From NCBI RefSeq assembly GCF_000143415.4, contig NW_003314342.1, positions 333,569 through 397,568 of the forward strand: DNA of 64,000 nt, given 5' to 3'. The first letter of the stretch is position 1, and each line of letters starts with the position of its first letter. Position numbers and translations under genes: made by a program. Shown piece by piece: positions 17,130-31,700 of this stretch. The DNA is from Selaginella moellendorffii. Lineage: Eukaryota > Plantae > Lycopodiophyta. Under the pieces are notes generated by a model. The model was not told the DNA's origin. It made no database searches and saw nothing but the letters and a program-made list of their open reading frames with translations.

Positions 17130-17741
17130 TCAGACCTGCGCAGCGGCGGGAGGATTATCAGCCGCGGCATCGCCATCCTCGCTCTTGGTCCCCGTCGGAG
17201 CATCGTTGCTCTTGATCAAGCCGCCGCCGCCGCCAGCGCCATCGCTCTCCTCTGGATATCTCACCACCACCACCGGGCAGACGCAGTGCTGGACGCAGTA
17301 ATCGCTGACGCTGCCCAGCCGCCCCTTCCTGGCGGGCGGCTTGGAAGCCCCAAATCCCCGGCTGCCCAAGATGAGGGCATTCACGCCCAGGCGCTCCACC
17401 TCGAGGCACAGCCGCTCCTTCATGTCGTGGTCCTTGACAATGTGGATTTTGTGTGGGAGCTTGGATTCCAGCAGCGGCCGCGCCAGATCCAGGCTCTTGG
17501 ACGACGTGAATGCGTCGAAATCGTCTTCCATCTTCTGCTGGGATTCCTCGTCGTCGAAGGACACGGCGTGGTCGACCACGCCCCAATCGGCGCCATAGAG
17601 AACGCTGGTGGGGCGGACATGAAGGAGGATCACGCTATCGCCCGGGCGGAGATAGTTCTCCACCGCCCACCGCACGGCATACGCACTCTCATCGCTCAAA
17701 TCCACCGCGATTGCGATCTTCCTCTGCCCGGTGCTCGCCAT
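17130..17741 (-). CDS. Universal stress protein (UspA domain, PHOS32/PHOS34-like)
   Basis: RKIAIAVDLSDESAYAVRWAVENYLRPGD...HIVKDHDMKERLCLEVERLG..ILGSRGFGA..LGSVSDYCVQHCVCPVVVVR. Confidence 0.95.
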   Translation of the reverse strand: MASTGQRKIAIAVDLSDESAYAVRWAVENYLRPGDSVILLHVRPTSVLYGADWGVVDHAVSFDDEESQQKMEDDFDAFTSSKSLDLARPLLESKLPHKIHIVKDHDMKERLCLEVERLGVNALILGSRGFGASKPPARKGRLGSVSDYCVQHCVCPVVVVRYPEESDGAGGGGGLIKSNDAPTGTKSEDGDAAADNPPAAAQV

Positions 17742-17871
17742 ACTCCCTCCAATCCAACCCTAGCTCTAGAGAATTCCTAGATCTTGCTCACACTTCCATG
17801 AATGCCATATCCAAATCCCTAGGTTTAGGGTTCTAGGGAAAGCGCAATATATTTTGCTCGTTTGCTCGGCT

Positions 17872-18351
17872 ATGGCGGAGGAGGGGAGCGGCGGCAGCAG
17901 GGGCAGGATGGTCGATTCCGTCGGGAGGCCAATCGCAAAGCCTCGCCCTCACCGCTGCGACGATCGGCTCGAGGACTTCATCAATGTGCGTAAGCTGCTG
18001 CCCGCATTCTCGCTTGTCAGGGTTTTCTTCTGCTTCTTCTTTCACGATTTTAGCTCTTCTTTGTTGCATTGTGGTGATCAGTCGCTTTTTGAGGGCTGGA
18101 GCTGTGTGCCTGGGCGTGCAAAACTTTGGTGGCGATGCATGCGCTCTGAGCCTGGGTATTTTCTCGATCTCTAGTGCTGTCTTTTTTTCTCTGTTTTTTC
18201 TTCTGTGATGAATGTGATAAGCTTGCAGTCAAGAGCCAGATGATCCTTACGTTTACCACGAACCGAAGCAGCGTAAATTTTTTCTTTCTTCATTTTCTTT
18301 TGAACCGTCTTGACATTGTTGCTTTCTTCTTATGGTTTTGCAGGTAAATAG
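17872..18351 (+). CDS. Small 79-aa plant protein resembling the At3g52230 family; exons 17872-17985, 18082-18155, 18229-18272, 18344-18351
   Basis: Manual GT-AG splicing with consistent phases gives MAEEGSGGSRGRMVDSVGRPIAKPRPHRCDDRLEDFINSLFEGWSCVPGRAKLWWRCMRSEPGQEPDDPYVYHEPKQRK*. The SLFEG..VPG..KL..RCMRS.PG.EP pattern matches that family from memory; no search was run. Confidence 0.7.
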
Positions 18352-18379
18352 TAGATCACAATGTCAGCTTTAGTAGAAG

Positions 18380-21300
18380 ATGACGCAAATGATAGAAGTT
18401 TGGCCAACAAAGACGATTCTACGAGCTTGTAGCTACAAGAATCGGCGCTGCATGAGCTCGGTGTCGTTAGTCGCACACCGCAGGTCTCTACTCTTTAGTG
18501 GTTTTGGAGAGTTTAGATGTAGTTCCCCAAAATTGTGGTGGCTATCTGCGACGCTTGCTGGTTAGTACATCATTTTTACTTTGACAGGTCATAACCAGTT
18601 CTTTATCCAGGGCGTAGCTGCCGGTTTTGTACTTCGTCAGGTGATTCATCGAATGCATTCGTAAGTCCTATTATTTTTTCTTTTTTTTTGTAAGAGAATT
18701 TCTTTCACAGAAGATCGACGATTCGAAGCTTGTGAAAGCTATTGTCTACGAGGCTACAAAGGGCTTTTGCAATTCCGCTGGGAGTACAAGAAAGTAAATT
18801 GTTCTTTCTTTGTTTTTCTGATCTCTTACTTACTTCCAGGTTTAGCGACTTTCTACGATCGCAGCTTTCAATACATGCTGAGAGAGGAGAAAGAGACTTG
18901 AAAAGTTTTGAAGTCATTCAAAATTTGGCCCAAGATGCTCAGTCTTACGGTCAAATGGACTGTGAGCAGAGAATTCAACTCCTTGACAGGGTATTTCACT
19001 TGAAAACTATGATGTTTTGAGTGAATGTGAATGTACAGGTCGCGCAGATCCAGGGGTTTTCTTGCGCCAGAGATATTGTTGATCACGAGATTGCAGTGGT
19101 CGAAGCTTCTCAAGATCTTACTCATGAGAACTGCGTGAAAAGGGATGAAGGTATTTCATCTTCCCAAGCTTTAACTGAGAACCCTTCGATTGTGTATGGA
19201 AGCAGTGAGCCAGTTGATCTTTTTAGCTCAAAAAAGATCGTGGTTCGCCCAGCGAAGCAAAAGCCGGATGTTAACAAAGCTATACAAAGTTCAAGCAAAT
19301 CACTACTGGATGTCGAGTTACCTCCAAGCAAAGAACAAAGCCAGCCATCGCCATCCCAACGTACTAAGGGCGTGTCCAGTTTGCTATATCAGGCCTCAGA
19401 GACCAGAAGTATTGATACAGAGAACGAGAGATGGAAACTGGACACGCTAATAAGCGACATGAAATGCTTCACGCCATATCAACGATCGCAGCTACAAGAA
19501 AACGGCTTTTACACGGTAAACGTCGCATTCTCCTCGAAAGTGTCTTACATGTTTTTTTTTAGGCTCGTAGTCTACTCAACCATTTTCCTCGTGCTCATGT
19601 GAGCTTTGAAAGCCCCACCGACACTTTGGAGGATGGACAATCTGTGGCATTGTTTGGGACAATTGTTATGACCAGGTAAAACTATTGTGACACGTCTTCA
19701 AAAACTTACTACCGGACACATTTCTGCAGGGCCTCGAAAATCAAAGACACTCTGGCTATGCTTGAAGTCATTGTGAACTGTAAGATTGCCCAGGAATGCC
19801 TAAGGCCTTGTGATGACGAAGTTGATGAAAATACCGTATTCCTGCACATCAAGAGGTTCTTTCAAGGCCCACGTTTTACATCGAGCTGGTTTTTGAACAA
19901 AACGGCCTCGGGTTACCCTGAAGGTTCCAAAGCAGCAGTTAGTGGCAAGGTATTGCATCGCACACTTTGATATTGCTTAACAGTTTCTTCTCACCTTACA
20001 GGTGAAAGCGATGAATAGAAAATCTCACTTTTTGCTAAAAGAGTATGCGGTTAAAGTTATTGAGGGCGAGGATTTTGACCAGCTTCGAAACGACGGAGAA
20101 GCATATCCTGTGTACTCATCGAAGGGTCTTTTAAATCCGAAGAAGATACAAGCGTTTATACAGAGGTAATTAACGCAAACCAGTGCAGCTGATTTTTGAA
20201 AGCTACATAGGTTGCTGAAAGGATTACCGACGGATATAGATCCTCTTCCCACTGAAATGCGAGACAAGTACGATCTTCTGAGTATAGAACAGGTTTTTCT
20301 TTATTAACTTTGTTGTTTCTACTTACATGCCTCCATTTCAGGCCTATTCCACCCTTCATCAGCCTACTAATCTCCAAGGGGCAAATGTAGCTAGGCGAAG
20401 AATCGTGTTTGACGACTACTTCTATCTTCAGGTCTAGTAAGATTCTAGTGAACCATGAGGCTGATGATCATATATATCTTACAGTTGGCGTTTCTTCTTC
20501 AAAGAAACTGCTTGAGAGGAAGTACCGTAAACAATGAGCTGGAAATGGATAAGTGGTCATCTCTAAGTCTGAAAGTCTTGAATGCGCTTCCTTTCAAGTT
20601 GACTGCTGGGCAGATCAAGGCTGCCTCTGAGATCATGTGGGATTTGCGTCAGCAAGCTCCAATGAGCCGTCTCTTACAGGTGCATATTTTGTTCCTTGCT
20701 TTGGTATGCTTCTGACTTCACGTTCATTGCAGGGAGATGTTGGCTGTGGGAAGACTATAGTGGCATTTCTCGCACTTCTTGACGTGGTCAGTTCAGGATA
20801 CCAGGTATGTTTCATGAAATTCGTCACCTTTCTATACTAATACCGTATCGCGCAGGCAGCTCTTATGGCACCCACGGATTTTGTAGTCTCGCAACATTAC
20901 AAACAGTTCCTGTCCTGGCTTGAAGTGCTGGATGAGAAGGATAGACCAAAGATAGCGCTTCTTTCCGGGTCTTTAAGTGCGGGTGAAGCTCGTCTAGTCC
21001 GAGAAGTGAGATTTACTCAAAGCGTTTATTTTTCTGCTTATTACATTTCTTTTCCTTCCAGGGTATCGCCAACAGAGAAATCTCTCTAATTCTCGGTACG
21101 CACGCTCTTATATCCAATTCGACTAATTTCCCGGCGCTGGGACTGGCTGTTATTGACGAGCAGCATAGGTTTGGTGTTGGACAGAGAGATCGTTTGAAAA
21201 CGGTACGCATTTTCTTAAATGAAGGCTGATCTTCTGAGATAGCGTTGTTGACAGGCACACGCTTCTGAGGCCGTCGAGCCGGACCTGGACGATGCTGATC

Positions 21301-22309
21301 TGGAAAGAGCGAGACTGGCGAGCACTACGCATGTTTTGCTCATGTCTGCTACGCCGATTCCTCGTTCACTTGCCTTAACGTGTCATGGAGACATGAGTTT
21401 GAGCCAGGTCTGTGCTCGTTTCCTTCTCACGCTTTTGCTTACTTCCATTCGTGTAGATTAATGAGATACCCCCGGGAAGGCAGCCTGTAGACACTTATGT
21501 TCTTCCAGATGACGAAGGAGGACGCAGGAGAGCTTACGAGGTAATAGTAGGAGCACTGCGATGAATCTGTCTGACAAGTGTTTTGCAGCTGGTGAGGGCA
21601 GAGCTCGAGAATGGAGGCAGGGCCTTTTTCGTTTATCCTCTCATCAACGAATCAAGCTCTTTCGAGCACCAGCGAGCCGCCGTCACCGAGTTCGACAAGG
21701 TTGTGAAGGAATTCAAAGACTACAAGTGCGCGCTCGCGCACGGCCGGATGAAGCCAGACCTGCGCAACCAAGAACTGAAACGGTTTCGGGAGGGAGAATG
21801 CCAGATCCTGGTGGCGACCAAGGTGGTGGAGGTTGGCATCGACGTTCCAGAGGCGACCGTGATGCTGATAGAGTCGGCAGAGGGCTATGGCCTGGCGCAG
21901 CTCCACCAGCTAAGAGGCCGGGTGGGACGAGGGACGAGGAAATCCTTTTGCATACTTCTTACGTGCTGCGATACGGCCGTGGAGCGACTCAAGCTACTTG
22001 AGAGCACCACCGATGGGTTCCGGCTGGCGGAAGAGGACTTGAAGATGCGAGGGCCGGGTGATTTGCTCGGGAAAAGGCAGTCAGGAACACACTTGGAGTT
22101 CGTGCTGGCTCGCCTGGGCGAAGACAACGATATATTGCTGCAAGCCAGGGCCGCTGCCGAGGTATGTAGTTATGTGCTTTTGAGAGACTCTCCATGCCTT
22201 TTTTGCTCGTGGTTGGCAGGAATTACTGGAAACTGATAAGAATCTGGAGAGCCATTCCAAGGTCAAGCATGAGATCAACATCAGGCAGCTGCCCAAGTCT
22301 TGGAGCTAG
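18380..22309 (+). CDS. RECG1: Organellar ATP-dependent DNA helicase RecG homolog, multi-exon
   Basis: Arg/Ser-rich transit-like N-terminus, LVKAIVYEATKGFCN..FSDFL (cyanobacterial-type RecG N-terminal segment), LPFKLTAGQ, MSRLLQGDVGCGKT, VIDEQHRFGVGQR, MSATPIPRSL, GLAQLHQLRGRVGRG, DGFRLAEEDLKMRGPGDLLGKRQSG. Stop at 22307-22309. Start could be ATG 18380, 18389 or 18452. Confidence 0.93.
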
Positions 22310-28110: not shown

Positions 28111-28776
28111 TTAGAATCTCGCCCAGCATCTGGTACATTCCGCCATGCAATCCCCCTTGCAGTCCACATTGTAGCCCAAAACTTGTGGCTTGCGAAGCAC
28201 CAGGCTTTTCAGCGTCCTCCCGCTGATCCCCCACGTAACATCCAACACCCCGACGTTGCCCTGGATCTCCTCCTCGAGCTTGCATCCCAGGATCTCGGGG
28301 AACTTCTTCATCAAACCCGAGACCTCCGCGTCCGACAGCCCCAGGCTCATGAGATACTCCACTTTCCCGGCCACCTCCTCCACAGCCGGGACGGATTTCT
28401 CCTTCCCCTCCCCCCAGTATGGCGATTTGAGGTGCCCCGACGACTTCCCGATCACTCTATCCGCGTCTTCGATCGAGAGGCCCAGCTCCATGAGCTTGCC
28501 GCGAGAGGCCTCCCATCTCTCGCGGAGCTCTGGAGGTAACGATCCCTGGAGATGGTCTTGATCTTGATCGCTGCCGCTGGCTTTGATGGTCACTAGTCGT
28601 CGTCTTCTTCTCGACGAACTACCTTGGAGTAGAACTCTACCTCTTTCCGGAGCGCCCACGATCCTGGGCTGCGCAATTGTCGATCCAAAACCGTGGTGGA
28701 GCTGCAGAGCAAGATCCGTGAGCTCATCCAGGAGAGAAGTAAAGCTTACCGGCAGAGCGCGCAAGAGCTCTCCCAT
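28111..28776 (-). CDS. Short mTERF-family protein with transit-like N-terminus; probable 48-nt in-frame intron 28749-28702
   Basis: VEYLMSLGLSDAEVSGLMKKFPEILGCKLEEEI..LVLRKPQVLGYNVDCKGDCMAECTRCWARF. Intron reads gtaagc...ctctgcag. Confidence 0.9.
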   Translation of the reverse strand: MGELLRALPVSFTSLLDELTDLALQLHHGFGSTIAQPRIVGAPERGRVLLQGSSSRRRRRLVTIKASGSDQDQDHLQGSLPPELRERWEASRGKLMELGLSIEDADRVIGKSSGHLKSPYWGEGKEKSVPAVEEVAGKVEYLMSLGLSDAEVSGLMKKFPEILGCKLEEEIQGNVGVLDVTWGISGRTLKSLVLRKPQVLGYNVDCKGDCMAECTRCWARF

Positions 28777-28785
28777 CCCGGCGCA

Positions 28786-31700
28786 CTAAAGCCCTATAGC
28801 GGTAAATTAGACCCAAGATCGATCGTTAGAGCTCGAGAAGAAGAAAAGTTTGATCTTACCGTGCGATGCTCCGAAGTAATTGGACTGGCTATGGATGAGC
28901 TCCAGCCGCCGCAAGATCAGCCCGGCGGCTCTCCGCGTCTTTGGATCGGCCGTTTGAGCAGCGTAGATGACGTGCATTTGAGCGGATGGGCCATACTGCG
29001 CGCAGTAGTCGGGGTGACTGAACAGCCGCTCCACGATGGCCAGCGCGTACCGCTGGGCGTCACGCCCGCCGCTACTCACCGCCGCTATCACGGCGCTCAG
29101 CCCCTTGGCTTTGTCGATGGCGTGGCAGCCCTCGACTGTACCAGCCGGATAAGCCTCCGAGGTGCCGTCGGCGGTATCCTCGTCCAGTACGCCCGTCAGC
29201 GTCGCCAGTGCCGCCAGTGCCGCTGCGGCGCCGCCGGCGGTATCGGCGGCGTCCGCCTTGACCGCGTCCTTGAGCAGCGCCACCAGCGGCACCACCGCGT
29301 CGGCTTCCACGAGGCAGAAGGTGTGCCGCGCGGTACACTCGCCGCCGTGGACCCGGCAGCACCGGCTCGGTCCGCGCGGCGCCAGCCACGGCAGGCACAG
29401 GTACACGACGCTCCTGCACGACTCGTCCTGTTTTCGCCGCTTTTGCTTGCTGCGGCTCTCGCTCAAGCTCCAGCTGCTCGACGAGAACTCTGCCAGGCAC
29501 CGCGCGGCACGCCGCCGCGTGAGCATGCTCCTCCCGGGCTCCAGCAGCTGCACCAGCCGCTCGATCATCCCCGCCTCGGCCAGCTTCTTCTGCGTCTCCA
29601 CCCCAAGCTTCGCGAACTTTAGAACGATGCCCACCGCCGCCTCGGTCGTCGCAGCGTCCTGGGAGGCGTCCATCACCAGCGCCGCCACTACGTGAAGTAG
29701 CCCCTTGTCTCCATCTTGGTGGTGATGATCCAGAGCGCTCCTCACGACTCCATTCCCCTCCATGCTCGCGATGATCCCCAGCATGGACGTTCTCTCCGGG
29801 TCCTCGGACAGGTTCTTCACGAGCTCGGCTATGATCCCGGGCTCCTCTCGCATCGCCGCGGACGCTTCCTGGCTGGATTCCTTGCTCAGCAGGCAAAACA
29901 GCTCCATTGCGTGCCGCCTTACTTCCACCACCATAGCTGGAGTTTTCGAAGCCGCGCTGCCCGGAGTCGACGTAGCCGGGTTCTTGAGGAGCGGAAGAAG
30001 TGTTTGCAGCGCCCTGTGCTCGCAGAGCTTTGCTCTCGTAAAGCCTCCGATGTTCTTCCCGTTGGCCAAGCCGAGGAGAGTGCTCAAGACGTGACTTTGG
30101 ACGCCAGCAGCCGTGGGCGAGCCCATGAATTGCAAGAACTCGTAGATGTAGATCTCGAGCTGGTTCATTGTGGCTTCGTCTTCGTCGCTCCAGGCATCAC
30201 CAGCGATCTTAGAGAGATCGGCCAGTATCCGGGCAGCGCCAACTTTTATCTCCTCCACGGACTTGACAGAGGTGAGTTTGTGTTCCATCAGCCTGAAGCC
30301 GTGCAAAGTGAGGACTGTCTCGGCGATGCCAGGCACGGATGTGAGGTTTTGGAGAGCACCTAGAGCTGCTTCGTTTTCTTCTCGCCGGAAGCTTTCGATC
30401 ATTTTCAGCAGCGACACCAGCACGTCCTCCGTTGCAAGTGACGTTTTGCTCGAGTCTGGCAAGTGCATGGCAGCGAGCGCGTTTGCCATGAGAATTCTCG
30501 ATTCCATGGATCCTGCAAGAGCATTTTCATCAAAGATGTGAAAGAACATCAAAACGAAGTGAATTACCTTCAACGAGCCTGTTTGCCAAAGGCCGCATGA
30601 GATTGGCCTCGGCCATTATCACAACATTTTCATCGCTGCTTGGGACATTCTCCAGGATGGCCGTCACGTTCGAGTTCACGTCCTCGTCCTCGCAGCCGAG
30701 TAAAGTTACCAGAAACACCACCGCACCTTGTGCGTGGCTGATCAGCTCCGCGGTGCTGGGATTCTCCGACAAGATCTTCATCACCAACACAGCTTCTCCC
30801 AAGTCTTCCTTTTGCCGAGTGAGGCTAAAAACCAGCTGCTCAACTATACCGGCCTTCACCATTGATTCCTAAAAGAAGCAAAATGATCAGTAGCTTATAA
30901 TTGGCAGACTACTTAGAACAAGGAAGAACCAGGCAAAACTGTCGATCAAAATATGCAAAGCCGCTCAAGAGAAAATCCTTGAAAGCACAAGCAAAGAAGT
31001 GAAAAGAAAAAGCAAGAGTGAAAGATCACAAGCTGCATGATCATGTCGCAAGCAAAGAAAGTGGAAGTTTGCAAAACGGTGATCATGTGCAAATCTCATT
31101 AAAAAAAAGCCTTCACAAGCACAAGCAACGCGATGAGAAAAGCAAAAGCAAGAGTGAAAAATCACAAGCTGTCTCAAAAGGTAGATTTTTCTCGCAAGCA
31201 AGGAACGTGAAAGTTGAAAGCTATCTTACCTGGTTTTCCACGTTGTCCCGAGCAAGCACCGCGAGCGCCGCCAGGGCCTCCTTGCGTAGAATCACGGCAT
31301 CCCGCGCGTCATGCAGAAGCTTCACCATCGGTCCAATCAGCCCAATGGTGCCAACTTTGTATTTGTTGAGCGGCTCCTCCTCACACACCGCGCGGACGTC
31401 CCGCATGGTCCGCACGTCTGTGTCGGAACAGCGCGGCTCTCCGAGAAGGCACCGCGCGGCACAGTGGAGCCGGGCCTCGAAGTTCCTCTCCCTCCACTCG
31501 GCAATGGACTGCTTTAGCGCGAAGTTGGATTTCATCTGCGTGGTGGGGAGCTCCTCGCCCATCACCGGGCATCGCGTGTTCCCCTCGGCAAACCATCGCT
31601 CGATCGCCTCGCGCTCGTACGTCTGCCCCGAGGCGATCTGGACGGGGTCGCGCATCACGTCGCGAGTGATCGGGCAGATGAATGGCTGCAAGGGCAGCAT

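Follow-up and report, generated by a model that had tools for sequence, protein, structure and literature searches.

From which AUG is the RecG helicase gene (RECG) of the lycophyte Selaginella moellendorffii translated, and what is the small spliced open reading frame (ORF) that ends just in front of it? In the window analysed here, a stretch of 64,000 nucleotides (nt) of the S. moellendorffii genome, an ORF of 79 codons in four exons runs from ATG 17872 to TAG 18349–18351, and ATG 18380, at which the public model of RECG begins, follows on the same strand after a spacer of 28 nt. Direct reading and translation agree exactly with the initial annotation in this respect, down to a last exon that starts at 18344 and comprises GT AAA TAG. 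The explanation that we slightly favour, with a probability of roughly 0.35, is that the 79-codon ORF is a lineage-specific long upstream ORF (uORF) in the leader of RECG, and that RECG itself is read from AUG 18380. Its closest competitor is a splice form that joins the small ORF in frame to RECG.

The locus was compared with the GenBank/RefSeq annotation of S. moellendorffii scaffold GL377646.1 (GCA_000143415.2; haplotype A) and with the second haplotype of the same assembly (GL377608.1, locus L002; haplotype B), which was reached via the allelic universal stress protein (USP). Positions are those of the window, and a slash within a motif marks a splice boundary. The limits of all features are collected in Table 1.

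The 79-codon ORF and the leader of RECG

The position of the promoter motifs and of 3′-end signals supports a uORF in the RECG leader. In a motif scan of positions 17600–18720, telo-box cores (at 17756 and 17826) and a TATA-like motif (TATATT at 17848) were found only upstream of 17872, and neither type of motif occurs in 17873–18720, ahead of RECG. The initial annotation had likewise seen a promoter-like region only near 17750–17870. Furthermore, the scan found no AATAAA-like signal 3′ of the small-ORF stop.

The splice signals and the reading frames point in the same direction. The introns of the small ORF are of the GT..AG type and measure 96, 73 and 71 nt, and the acceptor of the third, at 18343, is the strongest of the region. 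Downstream of this acceptor, the frame that begins with ATG 18380 is open and resembles an organellar presequence, and the annotated RECG starts at this same codon. The supporting evidence also includes base composition, which alternates along the upstream part as it does in the body of RECG: exons have a GC content of 0.46–0.66 and a T content of 0.14–0.28, and introns have values of 0.29–0.47 and 0.43–0.55, respectively. The bridge exon, which carries both the stop of the small ORF and ATG 18380, is exon-like by this measure, and the 27 nt that follow it are intron-like.

Comparison of the two haplotypes supports the same interpretation, as the exons of the small ORF are less diverged than its introns. 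A single change, synonymous (GCA to GCG) and located in exon 1, was found in 240 nt of exon sequence, exons 2 and 3 being identical, whereas the introns carry five substitutions and one indel in 240 nt; two of these substitutions and the indel, which is 1 nt long, lie in intron 3. Within RECG, introns differ by 1.97% and exons by 0.88%. Under a Poisson model with the neutral intron rate of about 2%, the probability of finding at most one change in 240 nt is about 0.05. Composition and haplotype pattern together indicate that the upstream exons are probably real exons. The three donors of the small ORF are weak (2.4–3.0 bits; leave-one-out scores of real donors range from 2.9 to 10.7 bits). In shuffled sequence, the small ORF stays open with a probability of 0.07–0.08, and being in phase carries a further factor of 1/3.

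The first AUG of the small ORF (AUG1) lies in the context tcGgctATGG, in which G at −3 and G at +4 make a strong start by a consensus that is not derived from Selaginella. Between AUG1 and AUG 18380 there are five AUGs, compared with 4.0 expected from shuffles, and thus no depletion. The spacer holds the out-of-frame ATG 18361 with an ORF of 23 codons, as the initial annotation had read it.

We also examined whether the small ORF has relatives. The query for the similarity searches consisted of exons 1 and 2 read through the stop-free intron 1, exon 3 (14 amino acids (aa)) being too short. Pfam gave no match, and a word search among proteins of 52–165 aa gave no relative. HMMER returned three matches among 1.84 billion representative proteins, all of them tandem-repeat proteins whose scores were built from many weak repeats and which we therefore regard as spurious. 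On the basis of these searches, we do not regard the 79-codon ORF as a conserved gene in its own right. The initial annotation had called it At3g52230-like; At3g52230 is listed as an OMP24 homologue of the chloroplast outer envelope (PMC4415399), and neither Pfam nor the word search nor HMMER detected any similarity that would sustain this identity. A conserved-peptide uORF (CPuORF) is unsupported for the same reason: no relatives were found, and the sole conservation seen is that between the two haplotypes of this one plant. Of the initial suggestion that RECG is a second cistron or stands behind a conserved-peptide uORF, the layout has thus held, and the conserved peptide and the hallmarks of a bicistron have not, as AUG1 is strong and AUGs are not depleted.

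Taking these observations together, we propose the following model. The RECG transcription unit would begin with three short spliced exons that contain the small ORF, and it would be driven by a telo-box promoter shared with the divergent USP gene. Exon 3 would be joined to 18344, so that the small ORF stops at 18351, and a 27-nt mini-intron (18561–18587) would be removed farther downstream. Translation of RECG would then start at AUG 18380 or at one of the in-frame AUGs 18389 and 18452, and the product would be an organellar protein with a presequence. The small ORF would not be a second functional cistron; it would keep the translation of RECG low via poor reinitiation, and the mRNA would probably be sensitive to nonsense-mediated decay (NMD). 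The shared transcript, the splicing of the 27 nt and translation are what we infer from the features described above.

The RECG N-terminus and the 27-nt element

The product of the annotated RECG (18380 to 22309 in haplotype A, 1022 aa) contains the Pfam domains DEAD (PF00270), Helicase_C (PF00271) and RecG_dom3_C (PF19833) and is thus a RecG helicase. The 18 synonymous and 7 nonsynonymous differences between the haplotypes show that RECG is under purifying selection. As the conserved RECG exon 18711–18793 lacks an in-frame ATG, some upstream start is required. It follows from these two facts that a functional mRNA either removes the 27 nt at 18561–18587 or skips 18344–18587 altogether.

Both options are arithmetically sound. 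The exon that begins at 18588 is in frame with the ATG-18380 frame (G + GT = Gly) and also with exon 3 of the small ORF (C + GT = Arg), and its junction with the next exon, 18640/18711, is in phase across an intron of 70 nt. The ATG-18380 frame is open to 18562 (61 codons) and would end at TAG 18563–18565 if the 27 nt were retained. It joins RECG only if they are removed, which preserves the phase and deletes the TAG. This TAG is present in both haplotypes and is therefore not a sequencing error. The initial annotation had correctly identified the junctions 18560/18588 and 18640/18711 as in-phase steps into a RecG N-terminus and had passed over the size of the first intron. The chance that the ATG-18380 frame is open is about 0.04 in shuffles, with a further factor of 1/3 for being in phase. 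Its first 60 residues are presequence-like in composition (9 K/R, 2 D/E and 13 S/T), and plant RECG works in plastids and mitochondria via an N-terminal extension (PMC4358946). Codon 25 of the frame is the in-frame AUG 18452, and the sequence that it opens, MSSVSLVAHRRSLL..., is typical of the start of a presequence. With 100 nt between the stop of the small ORF and this AUG, reinitiation is more plausible than with 28 nt.

The public models of the two haplotypes disagree about the start of the gene. The model of haplotype A begins at 18380, and that of haplotype B begins at an ATG in the polypyrimidine tract of intron 3 (L002:9390-9402, equivalent to 18331–18343). ATG 18331 was rejected as a start of RECG: a 1-nt indel between the haplotypes shifts the phase of this 12/13-nt "exon", which is therefore not coding. 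The B product has 1020 aa. Haplotype B carries a 6-nt in-frame deletion (two codons) in a poorly conserved N-terminal RECG exon (19039–19515), and when this deletion is discounted both models fit the use of the 27-nt intron to within one residue. The public models of both haplotypes thus rest on a doubtful intron, and the 5′ end of RECG needs an RNA-based revision.

How doubtful this intron is becomes clear from its neighbours. The other 16 introns of RECG measure 45–70 nt, so that an intron of 27 nt would be 18 nt shorter than the shortest of them, and its donor (1.9 bits) scores below every leave-one-out value for a real donor. To our knowledge, few land plant introns would be as short as a spliceosomal intron of 27 nt. 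S. moellendorffii is reported to have a fungal-like distribution of intron lengths, unlike other land plants (PMC6157073), and the 15 introns within the RECG body, all of 45–58 nt, form an extremely narrow distribution that agrees with this profile. Although introns are very short throughout RECG, the 27 nt are still an outlier. The other donors of the bridge exon that would keep the phase (18498, 18501, 18519 and 18522) were discarded, none of them scoring above 1.0 bit.

The size and the weak donor of the 27-nt element both weigh against a uORF followed by translation from AUG 18380, and they are joined by four further points. (i) The bridge exon has diverged by 1.44% between the haplotypes, which is near neutral, and of its three substitutions one is synonymous and two are nonsynonymous. 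(ii) A strong AUG1, five further AUGs and a uORF of 79 codons would make translation of RECG from the shared mRNA very inefficient. (iii) Since the start codons of the two haplotype models differ, the public 5′ ends are ad hoc predictions and not evidence-based, which takes weight from the annotated start at 18380. (iv) Exact-product look-ups of the 61-aa frame of either haplotype gave no match, word searches that used the small ORF or the N-terminal exon of RECG as query, each in its own length range, gave no RNA-derived fragments, and no RNA assembly spanning the locus was found by these look-ups and searches.

Because the motif KLWW occurs both in exon 2 and near the end of the bridge exon, an internal duplication was considered, and it was dismissed: the local alignment is at chance level, its score being reached in 144 of 2000 shuffles. 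The window holds a second arrangement of the bridge type on the minus strand (28740–28790), in which a 44-nt exon contains GG CTT TAG and an ATG follows 9 nt later. The start of this exon is not donor-like, and the eight coding nucleotides common to both bridge exons are therefore a coincidence.

The setting of the locus adds the following details. The intronless USP gene lies head-to-head with the small ORF, with 130 nt between them. The 638 nt between USP and RECG contain no annotated gene in the GL377646.1 record, and scans of the window for tRNAs and Rfam families gave no match. The ESM Atlas gave no usable match. GenBank and RefSeq leave the small ORF unannotated, contrary to the expectation in the initial annotation that an automated procedure would merge the two genes. 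In the lycophyte Diphasiastrum, a local tblastn search of three fetched loci found USP loci without RECG and without the small ORF, which are thus not syntenic with the Selaginella interval. Within the common promoter region, haplotype B has an 8-nt insertion, TTATAATT, at 17823–17824, adjoining the second telo-box core. The TATATT motif lies only 19–24 nt ahead of AUG 17872; a transcription start site (TSS) about 30 nt past it would leave AUG1 out of the transcript, whose first start codon would then be the in-frame AUG 17908 (A at −3, G at +4).

Table 1. Features of the USP–RECG interval (window positions; GC3, GC content at third codon positions)
Feature	Position	Strand	Details
USP gene (PHOS32-like), intronless	17130..17741	-	203-aa product identical to an NCBI S. 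moellendorffii protein; Pfam Usp
Shared bidirectional promoter region	17742..17871	.	telo-box cores 17756-17762 (+) and 17826-17832 (reverse complement); TATA-like TATATT 17848-17853
Small-ORF exon 1	17872-17985	+	38 codons; in-frame AUG 17908; GC 0.66, GC3 0.82
Small-ORF exon 2	18082-18155	+	74 nt; flanking introns T-rich
Small-ORF exon 3	18229-18272	+	44 nt; phase 1 end; donor AGC/GTAAAT
Small-ORF intron 3	18273..18343	+	71 nt; acceptor TTTTGCAG, strongest of the region, 13.1 bits
Juxtaposed acceptor/donor	18342..18351	+	AG/GTAAATAG; doubles as the last 8 coding nt of the small ORF, including TAG
Small-ORF exon 4	18344-18351	+	coding GT AAA TAG only, 8 nt
Bridge exon	18344..18560	+	217 nt: small-ORF stop, 28-nt spacer, ATG-18380 frame; GC 0.46, T 0.28; exon-like
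27-nt element	18561..18587	+	GTTAGT...ACAG; in-frame TAG; donor 1.9 bits, acceptor 9.5 bits; GC 0.30; intron-like
Coding exon common to both candidate RECG N-termini	18588..18640	+	53 nt; 1 nonsynonymous haplotype difference
RECG body	18711..22309	+	16 exons, 945 codons (splice model); continuous RecG-like translation

Alternative explanations for the upstream exons

The alternative that survives best, although we hold it to be somewhat doubtful, is that 18344–18587 is removed and that exons 1–3 encode a Selaginella-specific N-terminal extension of RECG, 77 residues long and read from AUG 17872. Such a product could arise either through the donor at 18344 (CAG/GTAAAT) and the acceptor at 18587 after excision of intron 3, or by splicing from 18273 directly to 18587. 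The initial annotation had named an in-frame fusion of the two ORFs as an outcome that would speak against its view, and it had missed that skipping 18344–18587 makes precisely this possible in silico. The junction 18272/18588 is in frame, its C + GT (Arg) being followed by HNQFF...LRQ/KIDDSK without a stop, the acceptor at 18587 scores 9.5 bits, and the public model of haplotype B uses the donor at 18344.

The site on which this choice turns has an unusual form. The boundary 18343/18344 reads TTTTGCAG/GTAAATAG, in which the best acceptor of the region (13.1 bits) directly abuts its best donor (9.9 bits). As the last three nucleotides of exon 3 are AGC, joining it to 18344 regenerates AGC/GTAAAT, and the locus has the form of a candidate recursive splice site. 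The hexamer GTAAAT is also found at the donors of the introns that begin at 18273 and 18794.

With fusion, all introns would measure at least 45 nt, and no mini-intron, uORF or reinitiation would be needed; a strong AUG1 behind a short leader fits a main start codon. No other part of the region has diverged as little as the exons of the small ORF, with their one synonymous change in 240 nt, and these exons form a frame that is open across three junctions, at the low chance given above. Set against this, the resulting N-terminus would not be presequence-like (13 acidic residues among the 79 of the small ORF), whereas plant RECG is organellar (PMC4358946). The intron removed would be 315 nt long, four to six times the length of all others here, and 217 nt of its content are exon-like. 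No match to exons 1 and 2 was found among the 1.84 billion representatives, which should include plant RECGs. Lastly, the ATG-18380 frame, open, in phase and presequence-like, would have to be a coincidence, with a probability of about 0.04 times 1/3.

Less probable again, and in our judgement unlikely, is a TSS of RECG's own in the pyrimidine-rich stretch 18273–18379, with translation from AUG 18380, the 27 nt still removed, and the upstream exons assigned to a promoter-proximal non-coding or orphan transcript that merely adjoins RECG. A Y-patch core promoter of the plant type is an equally possible identity for the T/C-rich sequence ahead of 18344, both public models begin RECG at or after 18331 with nothing annotated upstream, and no ribosome would have to pass a uORF of 79 codons. 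These advantages are opposed by the motif scan, which provides neither a telo-box or TATA-like motif in 17873–18720 nor an AATAAA-like signal for the 3′ end of an upstream transcript, by the quality of 18343 as a 3′ splice site, and by the exon-like haplotype pattern and composition of the upstream exons.

We give still less credence to a spliced mRNA with two ORFs that yields both RECG and an orphan protein of 79 aa, an arrangement that also requires the 27-nt intron. The same low estimate covers a variant in which the AG/GT site at 18343/18344 acts as a switch between two forms of RECG, one with a presequence and repressed by the uORF, the other with an extended N-terminus.

The weakest proposal, a true dicistron in which the first cistron of a spliced mRNA encodes a functional orphan protein of 79 aa and the second is RECG, can claim the geometry, the 28-nt spacer and the synonymous nature of the sole haplotype change in the small ORF, but is improbable in view of the lack of homologues, a codon-usage score that is positive in exon 1 only, a strong ORF1 start with five AUGs observed where four are expected, which is the opposite of algal bicistrons (PMC11892635), and the rare translation of the second ORF in Arabidopsis readthrough bicistrons, whose RNAs are NMD targets (PMC9768141).

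The four explanations (uORF, fusion, separate starts and dicistron) are not strictly exclusive. An mRNA encoding two proteins is a special case of the explanation by a leader uORF, and the gene could produce two splice forms side by side. As the frame of the small ORF and that of ATG 18380 are each unlikely to be open by chance, both splice forms may indeed exist.

If the upstream exons do lie on the RECG mRNA, as the favoured leader uORF would have it, an enzyme of organelle-genome repair would stand behind an unusually long, spliced uORF. Alternatively, RECG would carry a lineage-specific N-terminal extension, selected at the abutting acceptor and donor. Both outcomes are relevant to the question of how the dosage or the targeting of organelle DNA-maintenance proteins is set.

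Comparison with known systems

The abutting splice signals at 18343/18344 resemble recursive (zero-length-exon) sites of the form AG/GTAAGT, in which a strong 3′ splice site directly adjoins a strong 5′ splice site. Such recursive sites are known from animal introns of great length. The Selaginella locus differs in that the candidate site would serve the removal of only 315 nt in total.

Arabidopsis readthrough transcripts, in which intergenic splicing places two ORFs on one RNA, rarely translate the second ORF and are NMD targets (PMC9768141). The likeness to the Selaginella locus lies in the splicing of two ORFs into one RNA, on which the first stop acts like a premature one. The Arabidopsis transcripts join two genes, each annotated independently and equipped with a poly(A) site of its own, whereas neither an independent upstream gene nor such a 3′ end is evident here.

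The green-algal bicistrons (PMC7896298, PMC11892635) and the CDC26-TTM3 transcript of Arabidopsis combine a small ORF1, a very short spacer (28 nt here) and an organelle-related ORF2. Algal bicistrons that translate ORF2 have a weak Kozak-like context at ORF1 and few upstream AUGs, a pattern that fits leaky scanning (PMC11892635). The Selaginella locus shares the short spacer with them and departs from them in both the context and the number of AUGs. Furthermore, ORF1 encodes a conserved protein in the algal bicistrons and in CDC26-TTM3, whereas it is an orphan here.

With CPuORFs (Hayden and Jorgensen 2007, PMC2075485), the small ORF has in common its place upstream of the main ORF and the length of a peptide. 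It lacks the conservation of the peptide across species that defines this class, as no relative was found among the 1.84 billion representatives. Closer to the proposed arrangement are the uORFs of plant leaders in general, which begin at an upstream AUG in a strong context and stop a short distance ahead of the main AUG, and from which repression and NMD are expected (background in PMC9768141). The 79 codons in four exons are much longer than is typical of such uORFs, and the mRNA that the ORF would share with RECG is a proposed one.

A further comparison concerns RECG itself. For RECG of the moss P. patens, alternative N-termini have been discussed as a means of dual organelle targeting (PMC4358946), and the moss and Selaginella genes belong to the same family and each offer two candidate in-frame N-termini through splicing or the choice of start. 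The moss alternatives are two in-frame AUGs on one cDNA, whereas those of Selaginella would be mutually exclusive splice forms, one of which reads a presequence-like N-terminus from AUG 18380 and the other an acidic extension that is not presequence-like.

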